Below, piece after piece: positions 11,344-15,168 of a stretch of 64,000 bases of DNA. Below the pieces are notes generated by a model, which searched no databases, was not told the DNA's origin, and was given only the letters and a program-made list of their open reading frames with translations. The position numbers and the translations under genes were made by a program. The stretch's first letter is position 1, and every line of letters begins with the position of its first letter. Location of the stretch: the sequence record NC_042081.1. One strand, given 5' to 3'.

Positions 11344-11520
11344 TTAATTATTAAAAGATAAATCATAATCACTTTGTCTGCGATTCGGATTAACAGGATC
11401 AGGATATTTTCCAGTTTTGATAACTTCTTTTATAGCTCTAAAATCACGTTCTAGAAAATCTAGTTTTTTAACTAACTCTTTTTCTAATTCTTTATTGAGT
11501 AGTCTTCTTAATTTGCTCAT
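11344..11520 (-). CDS. Small ORF below the track cutoff (58 aa, MSKLRRLLNKELEKELVKK...)
   Basis: Manual translation; fills the gap between two genes; AAGAG RBS; helical heptads. Confidence 0.6.
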   Translation of the reverse strand: MSKLRRLLNKELEKELVKKLDFLERDFRAIKEVIKTGKYPDPVNPNRRQSDYDLSFNN

Positions 11521-11887
11521 CTACGTATACTCTTACAATGAACCAATTGATTAGGCCAAAACCTTTTGGTGTGATGGTAATGTCATCTTTATATCCATTT
11601 TTAGTGATTACATTACGTAATACTTTAATTGCTTCAGGTGGAATAAGATTAGCATTACCGGTAACACTATACTCGAAATAATAACCTACACCTGGTAAAT
11701 AACCTGATGCAATCTGGTTAGTACCTGTGATATTACTAACGTGTTGGAAGTCACTAAAAGCATTCTTGTAGAATAACAAAATATTAGGAATTACTTCATC
11801 CCTAATAGTAGAACTAGTAATGGCATCCGCCGATGGAAAATAAGGTACTAATTCATCTGTTACATTGGTGCTATTAATATCGGACAT
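11492..11887 (-). CDS. Hypothetical early protein (131 aa)
   Basis: GAGG RBS; early promoter upstream. Confidence 0.8.
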   Translation of the reverse strand: MSDINSTNVTDELVPYFPSADAITSSTIRDEVIPNILLFYKNAFSDFQHVSNITGTNQIASGYLPGVGYYFEYSVTGNANLIPPEAIKVLRNVITKNGYKDDITITPKGFGLINWFIVRVYVDEQIKKTTQ

Positions 11888-11933
11888 AATCTTTTCCTCA
11901 TTATAAAAGGATAAATATCTTTATGGTAATCCT

Positions 11934-11950
11934 GTAATATAGATTTAAAT
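11934..11950 (-). promoter_or_regulatory. Early (virion RNAP) promoter
   Basis: ATTTAAATCTATATTAC; contains the phiKZ early consensus TATATTAC. Confidence 0.75.
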
Positions 11951-11966
11951 TAATTTATAATGAATG

Positions 11967-12000
11967 ACATAAAGGAGCCCCTGGTGGGCTCCTTTAATGT
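11967..12000. terminator. Bidirectional terminator-like hairpin
   Basis: acat-aaaggagccc-ctggt-gggctccttt-a-atgt. Confidence 0.75.
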
Positions 12001-12007
12001 AATAGGT

Positions 12008-12150
12008 CCGACCCCTATCTAGAGGTCGGTAAGTAGCAAGGCACCGTAGTTGGGGCTCGTGTCGTTCCTGACGATACTTTAGTACCCCGGTTGATTTACG
12101 ACTGGATCACCCCCTTAAAGTGCAGTGCGTTTTACGCAAACTGCCTTGCT
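12008..12150 (-). ncRNA. Putative structured non-coding RNA (multi-branch; strand tentative)
   Basis: GC-rich non-coding stretch; 9-bp closing helix AGCAAGGCA/TGCCTTGCT, nested stems, an extra hairpin and an adjacent terminator. Confidence 0.55.
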
Positions 12151-12234
12151 CTATATCATTGCACTGTGCGTATTTTTATTCATTAGCTAATCTTATGACT
12201 TAAAGTTATCCACTATCCCTTAAGGAAAGATGCA

Positions 12235-15168
12235 ATGATAGATTCATTTAGGAGATTAATGGGCACGTTATCAATTACTGAGACTGATCAAGAAATTATT
12301 ATCAGTGGTTTTGATGGTGCGGCCTTTATTAGAGATATTAATAAGTATTGGAGGACTACTAAATTATCTACACAGTTATTCAATACAGTTAGTCGAAGTA
12401 GCGTTTCATTTTATAAATTCTTTGCTCCTGAAGTCTATTACATGCTAGAGGCGGTAAAGAATTATAGAAGTAGATATATCTCTATTAAAACAGTTAATGC
12501 TATTCGTGAAGCAATGCTTCAATATACCTGGCTAAAAAATACACGCCCAGTAGACCCTAATTCTGTTCCAGGTAGATTGAATTTCAAAATGTTAGATAAG
12601 TTGACATTCATACCTGACTATGAACAGAAAGCATATTTTGAAAACTATAACTACCGTATTGACCAATATGGTTTACGTGGTGATATCGTTGCTGGTCAAC
12701 CCGGTACTGGTAAAGCACAGCCATTAGATAGTCTTATAAAGATTCCTGGTGGCTGGAAAAAAATGGGTGATATAAAAGTTGGTGATCTAGTAACAAGTTC
12801 AACAGGGGAACCAACTGAAGTTATTGGTGTATATCCACAAGGTAAGAAACGTACCTATACATTTGAATTTAGTGATGGACGTAAAACTAAAGCATGTGGT
12901 GAACACCTATGGCGAGTATATTGTGAAGATTGGGTATTAGACAGTGATGGCTGGAAGATTATTTCTACAGATGAACTTAAAGATGCATTAAGTACAAATG
13001 TTACATCAAAGTACTATGTTCAACTTTGTAAATCAGAAACTAATCCAAATATTGATCTTCCAATCGATCCATACACTGTTGGTAAGACATTAGGTGAAAA
13101 TAAAATTAGATCAGAACAAACTGTATTTATTTCTAATGAATATCTACATGGATCAGATAGTCAAAGATTATCTTTATTGCAAGGTCTAATGGACACCTGT
13201 GGTGAAGTTGATAGTTCTGGTAAAATTAGTTTTACTAGTAATAGTTATACCTTAGTTGAACAAGTTCAATATCTAGTGCGATCATTAGGTGGTATTGCAA
13301 AAATCATCGATACAAAAGAGCATGATTATAAAGTAGATATTACTATTTCTACTCCATCGATATTGTTCCATTTACATGACGAAGCTAAGTATAATAAAGA
13401 ACTTTATCAGCATTTAGATGAGCTTAAGTTACAGATAACCAGTATAGTTGAATCTGATGAAGTAGAATGCCAATGTATTGCCGTGTCTGCACCTGATCAT
13501 CTTTATATCACTGATGACTTCATTGTCACTCATAATACTTTCATGACTATGGCTATTGCAGAAATGGTTGAGTCAGAGATAATTATAGTTGTATGTGAAA
13601 AGAAGTCTATTGAACTTGTATGGAAACCATCCATTATAGAGATGTATAAAGATAAACAAACAGTGTGGACAACTGCTGATGATAGACCTTATAATGGTCA
13701 AAGGATTCTTATATCTCATTATCAGGCACAAGATAAGATTATCGATATACTACGTAGTGGCATTCTTAAGAATAAGAAAATCACTGTCATTCTTGATGAA
13801 TCACACAACATGAATGATCCAAATTCTGCACAGTCTTTAAAATTCCAACAGATCTGTTTCATGACAGATTCAGACAATAGGCTATTAGCCTCTGGAACAC
13901 CTGTTAAAGCACTTGGATCAGAACTGGTGAGTGCCCTACGTGTTCTAGACGATCTATTCACTAAAGAAGTGGAAGAACGCTTTAAGAAGGCTTTTGGCAG
14001 GGATACTCAGAAAGGTCTAGATATTATCCAGCATCGTTTTGGTTTAATAGCTTACGTTATTGAGAAAAAAGATACTGATGTATTACCACCTAAAATTAAA
14101 TCATATCGTATCAAGATACCTAATGGATCACAATATACTCTTAATGCTATAAAACGTGACTGTGAAGCATTTATTAGAGAGCGCGTGAAGTTTTATGCTG
14201 CACGCAGGCCAGAGGATGAAAAGTATTGGGCTAAGTTGATGACAATACATGAGAATTCTCTGAAAACACCTGCACAAAGAGAAGGATTTGCACGTTATAA
14301 AAATCTGATTAAAATAATCCAGAAGAATCCTGATCCACGGTATATCGGTGAAGAGATTAAAGAATCTAACCTATATGAGAAAATGTTCATTGAACCAACA
14401 TTACCGCGTAATGAAATAGCTAATTTTAGAGATATCAAATCAGTTATAAAATACGTAATGTTAAAAATACAAGGTGAATGTTTAGGTAGAGTTCTAGGTG
14501 CTAAACGTATTCAGTGTCATGTTGATATGGTCCCATATATCGACTGGGTTGGTATTACCGAATCAACCATGAAGAAAACCATTACATTTACATCATTCGT
14601 TGAAGTTGTAGATGCAGTTGATAAATATACAAATAAACTAGGTATGAAATCAGCTGTTGTATATGGTAAAACTAATGATAATCTACCTCAGATAGTTTAT
14701 AAATTTGAGAAAGACCCTAAATTAAATCCATTGGTAGCTACATATGCTTCCCTTTCAACAGCGGTCCGTATGACGATGGCTGATACTATGGTGACAATTA
14801 ATTCACCGTTTAGGCATTACATTCTAGAACAAGCTATTGCTCGAATTTACCGTAAAGGTCAGGATTCACAAACAGTCGTATATCAATGTACTCTCGATAC
14901 AGAAGATGAACCGAATATCTCAACAAGGTCAGATGACATTCTAAAATGGAGTCAGGCAATGGTTGAAGCTATTATGGGTATTAAATCTCCATTTGAGATC
15001 ACAGAGTCATTAGAAAGTTATGTTGATAAAAATAATAATTTTGATGAAAATAAAATCATTTATCAGATGCTAAAAGAATCATTTGAGAAGTATGATATCG
15101 CAATTGATTTTAATGACTTTGATACACGTATGTATAAACCATATCAGCCCGCATATATGCGGTTTTAA
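12235..15168 (+). CDS. SF2 (SNF2/DExH-like) helicase, phiKZ gp203-like, intein-containing precursor (703 aa after splicing)
   Basis: Split Walker A GQPGTGK|T, motif II ILDESHN, motif III ASGTP, motif VI QAIARIYRKGQ. Confidence 0.92.
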   Translation: MIDSFRRLMGTLSITETDQEIIISGFDGAAFIRDINKYWRTTKLSTQLFNTVSRSSVSFYKFFAPEVYYMLEAVKNYRSRYISIKTVNAIREAMLQYTWLKNTRPVDPNSVPGRLNFKMLDKLTFIPDYEQKAYFENYNYRIDQYGLRGDIVAGQPGTGKAQPLDSLIKIPGGWKKMGDIKVGDLVTSSTGEPTEVIGVYPQGKKRTYTFEFSDGRKTKACGEHLWRVYCEDWVLDSDGWKIISTDELKDALSTNVTSKYYVQLCKSETNPNIDLPIDPYTVGKTLGENKIRSEQTVFISNEYLHGSDSQRLSLLQGLMDTCGEVDSSGKISFTSNSYTLVEQVQYLVRSLGGIAKIIDTKEHDYKVDITISTPSILFHLHDEAKYNKELYQHLDELKLQITSIVESDEVECQCIAVSAPDHLYITDDFIVTHNTFMTMAIAEMVESEIIIVVCEKKSIELVWKPSIIEMYKDKQTVWTTADDRPYNGQRILISHYQAQDKIIDILRSGILKNKKITVILDESHNMNDPNSAQSLKFQQICFMTDSDNRLLASGTPVKALGSELVSALRVLDDLFTKEVEERFKKAFGRDTQKGLDIIQHRFGLIAYVIEKKDTDVLPPKIKSYRIKIPNGSQYTLNAIKRDCEAFIRERVKFYAARRPEDEKYWAKLMTIHENSLKTPAQREGFARYKNLIKIIQKNPDPRYIGEEIKESNLYEKMFIEPTLPRNEIANFRDIKSVIKYVMLKIQGECLGRVLGAKRIQCHVDMVPYIDWVGITESTMKKTITFTSFVEVVDAVDKYTNKLGMKSAVVYGKTNDNLPQIVYKFEKDPKLNPLVATYASLSTAVRMTMADTMVTINSPFRHYILEQAIARIYRKGQDSQTVVYQCTLDTEDEPNISTRSDDILKWSQAMVEAIMGIKSPFEITESLESYVDKNNNFDENKIIYQMLKESFEKYDIAIDFNDFDTRMYKPYQPAYMRF
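12715..13536 (+). mobile_element. Class 3 intein (274 aa) with degenerate LAGLIDADG endonuclease
   Basis: Starts AQPLDS; block B CGEHLW; block F CQCIAV; ends IVTHN followed by +1 Thr; WCT triplet present. Confidence 0.92.

Follow-up and report, generated by a model that had tools for sequence, protein, structure and literature searches.

A small RNA can imitate a nucleic-acid ligand and in this way occupy a core machine of gene expression, as 6S RNA does with RNA polymerase. The element described here, a structured RNA gene of Pseudomonas phage SL2, would follow the same logic with the 30S ribosomal subunit as its putative target, but it has no sequence or structural similarity to 6S RNA and no Rfam match. 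RsmY, RsmZ and CsrB are likewise small structured RNAs with purine-rich motifs that resemble Shine-Dalgarno (SD) sites, and one hairpin loop of the element in SL2 and phiKZ, CAGGA, recalls them. Unlike these RNAs, the element has no conserved GGA-in-loop motifs, and Rfam gives no match here either.

The SD sites of mRNAs are complementary to the CCUCC-containing tail of 16S rRNA, as the element is. They match over 4-9 nt, whereas the element matches over 14-21 nt, reaching the last 16S base and helix 45. Moreover, no start codon or open reading frame (ORF) stands behind its match, and the RNA that carries this match in its junction loop is folded and stands alone. Pairing with rRNA is also known from eukaryotic viruses, where the BYDV-type 3' translation element and loop IIId of the HCV IRES engage ribosomes through viral pairing with 18S rRNA; such elements are cis-acting parts of the viral mRNA, and their pairing covers 3-6 nt only. 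No natural trans-acting RNA with the anti-SD tail as its target is known to us. A tRNA-Val fragment (PMC5711459) is likewise proposed to occupy the small subunit in competition with mRNA. As reported, that fragment is a processed piece of a host tRNA with no anti-SD pairing, whereas the element is virus-encoded, dedicated and structured.

A further likeness comes from other phages. In PAK_P3, an 80-nt RNA upstream of tRNA01, found by ONT-cappable-seq, contains GAGGAGGUGAUCCAGC. Like the element, RNAs of this type are expressed small RNAs of Pseudomonas phages with the same complement to the 16S tail. They differ from it in that they do not match our covariance model of the element (R1), fold about as well as shuffled sequences (z about -0.3), hold the motif in a hairpin and lie in a tRNA cluster. 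The form AGGAGGUGAUCCAG(C/U), a 15-16-nt complement of the 16S tail, occurs in 170 records, almost all of them Pseudomonas phages; the carriers that were inspected belong to Nankokuvirus and Pakpunavirus and infect P. aeruginosa. It adjoins tRNA genes in all three loci examined, namely L170 679-762 (CHA_P1), L171 672-752 (PAK_P4) and L172 (C2-10_Ab02). The PAK_P3/PAK_P4-type carriers are myoviruses unrelated to the phiKZ-like phages, and their copies of the motif have either arisen by convergence or been transferred as a short module.

Small RNAs bounded by terminators have been described in the phiKZ-like phages themselves, namely 3'UTR_PHIKZ298, 5'UTR_p40, 17 candidates derived from 5'UTRs and sRNA005, but their loci differ from that of the element. 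None of the published small RNAs of phiKZ and 201phi2-1 is reported to match 16S rRNA, and the main text on 201phi2-1 does not mention 16S complementarity. The Grad-seq paper names two phiKZ ncRNAs only, both other than the element, which is also absent from the 17 phiKZ ncRNA candidates of Putzeys et al. (Table S7). In a search of the full-text literature, neither this RNA nor any phage RNA directed at the anti-SD sequence was found to be described; Table S4 of the 201phi2-1 study, with its 11 sRNAs, may include the orthologue among intergenic sRNAs without a name.

The locus and its transcription signals

The window, that is, the whole 64,000-nt stretch of DNA analysed, belongs to Pseudomonas phage SL2, a relative of phiKZ (100% identity to MF805716 73800-74400). 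Its positions 11800-12400 correspond to MF805716 73800-74400 and share ~95% identity with phiKZ 212607-213205 on the opposite strand. The element is found once in the window (covariance model R1) and lies in a 347-nt gap between a minus-strand and a plus-strand ORF. The GC-rich island pointed out there by an earlier note on this DNA is real, with a GC content of 0.53 at 11975-12124 as against ~0.30 in the flanks. The features of the locus other than the fold are as follows.

12235-15168, plus strand: ORF of a PHIKZ203-type SNF2/DarB-like helicase, bordering the gap
12187-12198, plus strand: late promoter GCTAATCTTATG, corresponding to the published phiKZ P107 of PHIKZ203
12151-12180, minus strand: predicted middle-type promoter, an A-run with TAC (AAAAATAC, 12177-12170) followed by TATAG (12155-12151)
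12004, minus strand: equivalent of the phiKZ 3' end T095, transferred through the alignment
11969-11995, minus strand: intrinsic terminator AAAGGAGCCC-ACCAG-GGGCUCCUUU, then AUG; its hairpin is kept in every homologue
11943-11934, minus strand: early promoter TCTATATTAC, preceded by an AT-rich stretch and resembling listed phiKZ early promoters
11492-11887, minus strand: ORF of the PHIKZ204 homologue, bordering the gap on the other side

On these signals, the element is read as a stand-alone gene for a structured non-coding RNA on the minus strand, with a predicted middle promoter and a terminator ending near 11969. The predicted start of the RNA is the G at 12151, the last base of TATAG. In the subtype A homologues inspected by eye, the spacing from the T of TAC to the G of TATAG is 22 nt, with the exception of one contig (L135), in which it is 24 nt. 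The middle promoters of phiKZ carry a TACT motif ~22 nt upstream of the start, with an A-run before it (Wicke 2020), and the upstream signal of the element also resembles the listed phiKZ middle promoters P082, P098 and P116. Subtypes B-D have TATG instead, a late-type start motif, and helix P1 begins with the G of this motif.

The terminator is a G+C hairpin in every homologue; its stem sequence differs from genus to genus, and (C)TTTATG stands behind it. Both its U-tract and the promoter motif are conserved in the minus sense only. In SL2 the U-tract runs into an ATG at 11969-11974, as it does in L002-L007 and other homologues. Since TATG is the phiKZ late-promoter and start motif, the terminator and the next late promoter appear to overlap.

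In phiKZ, ONT-cappable-seq placed a 3' end, T095 (213001 +), on the strand of the element just past hairpin P5 (Putzeys et al., bioRxiv supplement). With T095 mapped to 12004, an RNA of ~148 nt is obtained. Among the phiKZ start sites of the same supplement, none is listed for the element. The earlier note had supposed that the RNA might already appear in phiKZ transcriptome studies; a 3' end has indeed been mapped inside it, though the published lists of ncRNAs do not include it.

The neighbouring genes have promoters of their own. Between the element and the helicase, phiKZ has the late start site P107 of PHIKZ203 (212808 -; Putzeys et al., bioRxiv supplement), and the element is therefore not a helicase leader. 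Since GCTAATCTTATG corresponds to P107, the helicase transcript begins ~40 nt upstream of its ATG and does not contain the RNA. An early promoter had also been placed next to the RNA. Such a promoter does exist, but it serves the downstream PHIKZ204 homologue, which TCTATATTAC would drive independently of the RNA; the latter has a predicted middle-type promoter of its own. The length of the helicase ORF varies between relatives: it spans 977 aa in SL2 and ~1050 aa in PS119XW and PhiPA3, and in phiKZ PHIKZ203 is annotated with 703 aa and followed by a separate PHIKZ202. The phiKZ gene may thus be split or truncated.

Fold, homologues and genomic contexts

The minus-strand RNA folds at -78 kcal/mol (z = -5.8), and none of 200 shuffled sequences folds as well. 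The consensus is a three-way junction formed by P1, P2 and P3-P4, followed by an extra hairpin, P5, and then by the terminator. Its parts in SL2, all on the minus strand, are listed in the order of the RNA.

12142-12150, minus strand: 5' strand of P1 (AGCAAGGCA), pairing with 12035-12043 and closing the three-way junction
12122-12144, minus strand: P2, a hairpin GCAG..UGCG-UAAAA-CGCA..CUGC that has 3 nt in common with P1
12097-12117, minus strand: J2/3, single-stranded and invariant (AGGGGGUGAUCCA), a 21-nt complement of the Pseudomonas 16S rRNA 3' terminus
12052-12088, minus strand: P3, GGGGU (12088-12084) with GCCCC (12056-12052), enclosing an internal loop and P4
12077-12059, minus strand: P4, with loop CAGGA, inside P3 past the internal loop CUAAA / GA
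12035-12051, minus strand: J3/1 (AACUACGG) and the 3' strand of P1 (UGCCUUGCU, 12043-12035), with ACGG and GCCU nearly invariant
12008-12029, minus strand: P5, a hairpin (CCGACCUCUAGAUAGGGGUCGG) of subtype A only

Covariance model R1 recognizes 26 distinct homologues (E 6e-25 to 3e-5), which fall into at least four subtypes of phiKZ-like jumbo phages. A blastn search with the intergenic region matched PS119XW, PA1C and HPP-Temi (Pawinskivirus), as well as PhiPA3, 201phi2-1, Phabio and Viktualia; further copies came from pattern scans of IMG/VR and JGI metagenomes combined with R1. The element is also carried by pPa_SNUABM_DT01, a phage with phiKZ-type RNA polymerases, by a clade of ~238 kb contigs (L217, L224) and by two shorter contigs (L227, L284). 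One protein encoded next to the element in L217 is nearest to proteins of Xanthomonas jumbo phages. A match in phage Goslar was rejected, as it shared a similar terminator and nothing more. A broader pattern scan for homologues gave false positives only among the matches listed. CCAA variants, which an enterobacterial 16S rRNA might favour, were sought with a 14-mer scan that gave chance matches only; all loci went through a regex pre-screen and about a third of them (L289-L332) through the model, with no homologue by either.

The alignment of the 26 sequences shows compensatory changes across the homologues, for which the earlier note had proposed to look. Cells of the modelled pairs are paired in 87.4% of cases against 69.7% in shuffles. 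Two-sided changes occur in 116 cells, where 42.5 are expected, and affect 17 of the 25 pairs. The covariation score is 0.475, against 0.19 in shuffles (0 of 500 as high), and falls to 0.08 or less once the helix partners are slid. This alignment was fitted to the structure, a bias in the structure's favour; the slide controls and the raw helix sequences nevertheless agree, and the covariation signal is therefore taken as real. An alignment of 18 sequences gives the same picture.

The compensatory changes support P1, P3 and P4. In P1, four of the six modelled pairs change on both sides, as in CAAGGC/GCCUUG versus ACAGGC/GCCUGU. All five pairs of P3 and all seven of P4 do so, and P3 appears among the homologues as GGGGU/GCCCC, GAUAC/GUAUC or GGUAC/GUACC. 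The outer pairs of P2 are paired in 100% of cases, one of them changing from G-C to A-U in subtype C, and its loops are often stable tetraloops (GUAA, UUCG). The internal loop between P3 and P4 (5' xUAAA / 3' GA) looks to us like a UAA/GAN motif. At the site of P5, other genera have a hairpin with different stems, read by eye as CGUUGG/CCGACG, CGUCAAC/GUUGACG and GUUUGG/CUAAAC. An alternative pairing of UAAGG with CCUUG, offered by RNAalifold, is contradicted by the ACAGGC/GCCUGU subtypes, which retain P1 although UAAGG and CCUUG could not pair in them.

Most of the helices drawn from the SL2 sequence by the earlier note recur in the homologues: P1, P3, P4, the inner part of P2 (TGCGT/ACGCA), P5 at 12008-12029 and the terminator hairpin at ~11971-11995. 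Two others, CGTA/TACG (12045/12097) and CAC/GTG (12108/12120), are present in SL2 but find no support in homologues, and the second falls within the invariant unpaired segment. The switch imagined between CAGTGC (12123) and GCACTG (12161) is not conserved, and one of its arms lies upstream of the predicted start, in the promoter. The P4 loop, which had been taken for RsmA/CsrA-like, reads CAGGA in phiKZ and SL2 only; in most homologues it is a G-N-G-A tetraloop (GGGA, GAGA, GCGA or GUGA in other genera).

The family does not correspond to a known one, as had been expected. Rfam 15 gave no match in the whole window at gathering thresholds. At E <=10, 11850-12300 gave only weak, terminator-driven matches of 15-21 bits, against thresholds of 45-70, and ARAGORN found no tRNA or tmRNA gene in the window or at homologous sites. 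There is no conserved ORF over the element either, the longest ORFs being of 7-33 codons and unconserved. The proposal of a novel structured ncRNA is thus supported. Viktualia (L006 1460-1549), DT01 (L164 2524-2646) and HPP-Temi (L007 1424-1513 and 1611-1706) have annotated small CDSs for hypothetical proteins that overlap the RNA or run against it. Since the conservation there is of the RNA type, these CDSs are probably annotation artefacts.

As to the strand, the minus-strand reading of the earlier note agrees with the promoter, the terminator and the phiKZ 3' end. Read from the opposite strand, the helices pair at 84.0% instead of 87.4%, and G-U cells outnumber A-C cells by 43 to 23. This preference is only mild, and the strand call therefore rests mainly on the promoter, terminator and 3'-end signals. 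It is very improbable that a plus-strand transcript is the working molecule, mimicking the 16S 3' end (CAAGGCACCGUAG ... CUGGAUCACCCCCUUA) as a decoy for the factors or nucleases that recognise it. The plus strand does fold better than its shuffles (z = -3.6), and the nearly equal pairing of the helices would suit such a transcript. However, it is the minus strand that bears the promoter motif, the U-tract of the terminator and the 3' end mapped in phiKZ, and the excess of G-U cells speaks for this strand as well; the plus-strand late start site of the helicase, moreover, is located downstream of the element.

The genomic surroundings differ between genera. In PhiPA3, the element is co-directional with the helicase gene and directly upstream of it; in phiKZ, SL2 and PS119XW it is divergent from this gene, and in 201phi2-1, Phabio, Viktualia and DT01 small unrelated ORFs lie on both sides. 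Across the genera compared, the element does not keep to one place and one direction in front of the same orthologous gene, as a cis leader or riboswitch would. These contexts bear on the idea of a ribosome-loading leader, in which read-through of the terminator would let the SD-like site preload 30S subunits for the genes downstream, as a standby site or enhancer. In several genomes ORFs do begin 25-80 nt past the terminator, and many published phiKZ small RNAs are premature termination products derived from 5'UTRs. Yet the downstream genes vary among genera, strong G+C terminator hairpins are present in every homologue, the next gene in phiKZ and SL2 has its own early promoter past the terminator, and no transcription unit joining the element to downstream genes is reported for phiKZ (Putzeys et al., bioRxiv supplement). 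A cis role of this kind is accordingly held to be rather unlikely.

In some contigs of subtypes A and B, the RNA is followed at a short distance by tRNA genes of the same strand (L156 60-136 and 872-948, minus; L167 1637-1713), an arrangement that echoes the tRNA-cluster setting of the PAK-type motif.

A complement of the 16S rRNA 3' tail

The most telling feature of the element had escaped the earlier note. The only invariant unpaired block, AGG(G/A)GGUGAUCCA, present in all 26 homologues, is the reverse complement of the 3' end of 16S rRNA, i.e., of the anti-SD tail. Counting Watson-Crick and G-U pairs, 14-21 contiguous pairs with the tail are formed in each of the 18 homologues tested, and in most homologues the match extends past the invariant 13 nt. 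In SL2, the run covers 21 nt (12097-12117, minus) and opens opposite the terminal 16S base (offset 0). It is unique in the 64-kb window, where the next best run has 12 nt, and the best runs in shuffled windows have 12-14 nt. For the duplex, energies of -30 to -38 kcal/mol are predicted, while opening the RNA would cost 4-9 kcal/mol.

For the comparison, the 3' end of E. coli rrsH was fetched (...CTGCGGTTGGATCACCTCCTTA), as were loci of many Pseudomonas genomes other than P. aeruginosa, in which the 16S gene ends in ...CTGCGGCTGGATCACCTCCTTA; the P. aeruginosa tail is taken to be identical to that of other Pseudomonas. A 30-nt BLAST query from the PS119XW copy matched annotated 16S ribosomal RNA records in antisense, at the 3' end of the gene. 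As the tail is identical in every known host, the invariant motif cannot covary with its target. The segment reads GGGGG in 25 of the 26 homologues, in which GGA is lacking, and a perfect Watson-Crick target of this variant (GGAUCACCCCC) was not found in 750 kb of gammaproteobacterial rRNA-operon loci. One record labelled as a phage (L522, CAKLQF020000045.1, 'Acinetobacter phage MD-2021a') holds a piece of a bacterial rRNA operon (16S, tRNA-Ile, tRNA-Ala) and is probably a mislabelled host contig.

Within the RNA, single-sequence folds give no consistent partner for the invariant segment, and the motif is ~45% unpaired in thermodynamic folds. The CCCC of P3 (12052-12056) has two possible partners in SL2 and phiKZ, and in these two only: the GGGG of P3 (12084-12088) and the GGGGG of the motif (12110-12114). 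The minimum-energy folds of single SL2 and phiKZ sequences choose the latter, which may be a lineage-specific self-masking.

Could the block act as an initiation site? In the sequences read by eye, no AUG, GUG or UUG stands ~5-9 nt past the motif, and the nearest GUG falls inside the predicted 16S duplex. A translated mini-ORF (GUG AUC CAG ... stop, 4-9 codons) would act like the bar minigenes of phage lambda. In its favour, GUGAUCCAG does not vary, and in the homologues read by eye a stop codon is reached within 4-9 codons. Against it, the GUG is located 2 nt past the UAAGG block that would pair with the last five 16S bases, the conservation of the peptide is limited to three residues, and the compensatory changes point to selection on RNA structure. 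Such a minigene is the least probable of the roles weighed here.

The length of the match also brings to mind an antisense action on precursor or mature 16S rRNA. The RNA would then prevent the maturation of the 3' end, protect the tail against a nuclease or hibernation factor of the host, or form a duplex for RNase III that removes the anti-SD sequence. The complementarity of 17-21 nt does extend into helix 45, on its 3' strand (CGGCUGG), whose accessibility is greater in precursors, and known toxins cut the same region of 16S rRNA. However, a full antisense invasion would need a second 16S-like block, and the candidate for it, CUACGG..CCUUG (J3/1 and the 3' strand of P1; 16S ~1495-1510), is unsupported. 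Its alignment reaches p 0.03-0.1 against shuffles in a few homologues and gives no signal in most. If real, it would make the whole RNA a colinear antisense to 16S around helix 45. An antisense role is therefore judged decidedly unlikely.

Pairing with 16S rRNA does not account for everything that is conserved. The fold is complex, its loops are mostly G-N-G-A, and the invariance of P2 and J3/1 (ACGG..GCCU) is left unexplained by base pairing with the tail; furthermore, GGGGG is retained over the perfect GGAGG. These features would suit a protein-binding scaffold, whose invariant segment and junction bind a protein of the phage or the host; candidates are a ribosomal protein adjacent to the anti-SD, S1, an initiation factor and an RNA-binding protein of the phage. 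The 16S match would then be mimicry of an mRNA site or a coincidence. But a contiguous match of 14-21 nt, which in SL2 starts from the terminal 16S nucleotide, is far beyond chance. In most homologues it also outreaches the 13 invariant nt, and the motif recurs in the structurally unrelated RNA of PAK_P3 type. A scaffold as the principal role is thus considered unlikely.

A possible decoy for the small subunit

The reading that we favour, and to which we give about even weight, is that of a trans-acting RNA that pairs with the anti-SD tail of 30S subunits and captures or blocks them from mid-infection onwards; we infer both the binding and its effect on translation initiation. The non-virion RNA polymerase of the phage would read the minus strand from the middle-class promoter, and the product, a structured RNA of ~150-185 nt, would end at the intrinsic terminator. 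Its three-way junction would present a loop of ~30 nt carrying AGG(G/A)GGUGAUCCA. This loop could pair with the free 3' tail of 16S rRNA on the 30S subunit, far more strongly than the SD sites of mRNAs, and would offer the bound subunit no start codon. From the strong pairing and the lack of a start codon, it is proposed that 30S subunits would be captured or blocked and initiation reshaped. That the match reaches the terminal 16S base fits this proposal, since a free 3' tail could wind into a closed loop.

Some points speak against the decoy. The mRNAs of the phage appear to use SD sites too, such as AAGGAAAG upstream of the helicase start, and an unselective sponge would therefore hurt the phage as well. 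With the conserved GGGGG in place of GGAGG, the match is not perfect but includes a G-U pair, and pairing beyond ~13 nt would require the base of 16S helix 45 to be opened. The absence of the RNA from the lists of the Grad-seq and ONT studies of phiKZ, with no start site called for it, also weighs on this side, as do the only ~45% of the motif left unpaired in thermodynamic folds and its possible pairing with the CCCC of P3 in SL2 and phiKZ. A wider version of the proposal, in which giant nucleus-forming phages and, independently, smaller Pseudomonas phages encode decoy or sponge RNAs that seize 30S subunits by up to 21 nt of pairing, is more tentative, and we place it somewhat below even.

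Whatever its function, the element is a well-supported new RNA family in a well-studied genome, and it corrects several small-protein annotations over it that are probably spurious. phiKZ is the model of the nucleus-forming jumbo phages, which are under study for therapy, and in the takeover of host translation by such phages only proteins have so far been implicated, e.g., the ribosome-binding PHIKZ014. If the decoy reading is true, the RNA would be a natural ribosome decoy or sponge and add a new layer to the viral control of translation initiation. A conserved RNA aimed at the anti-SD tail would then be a new principle of host takeover.
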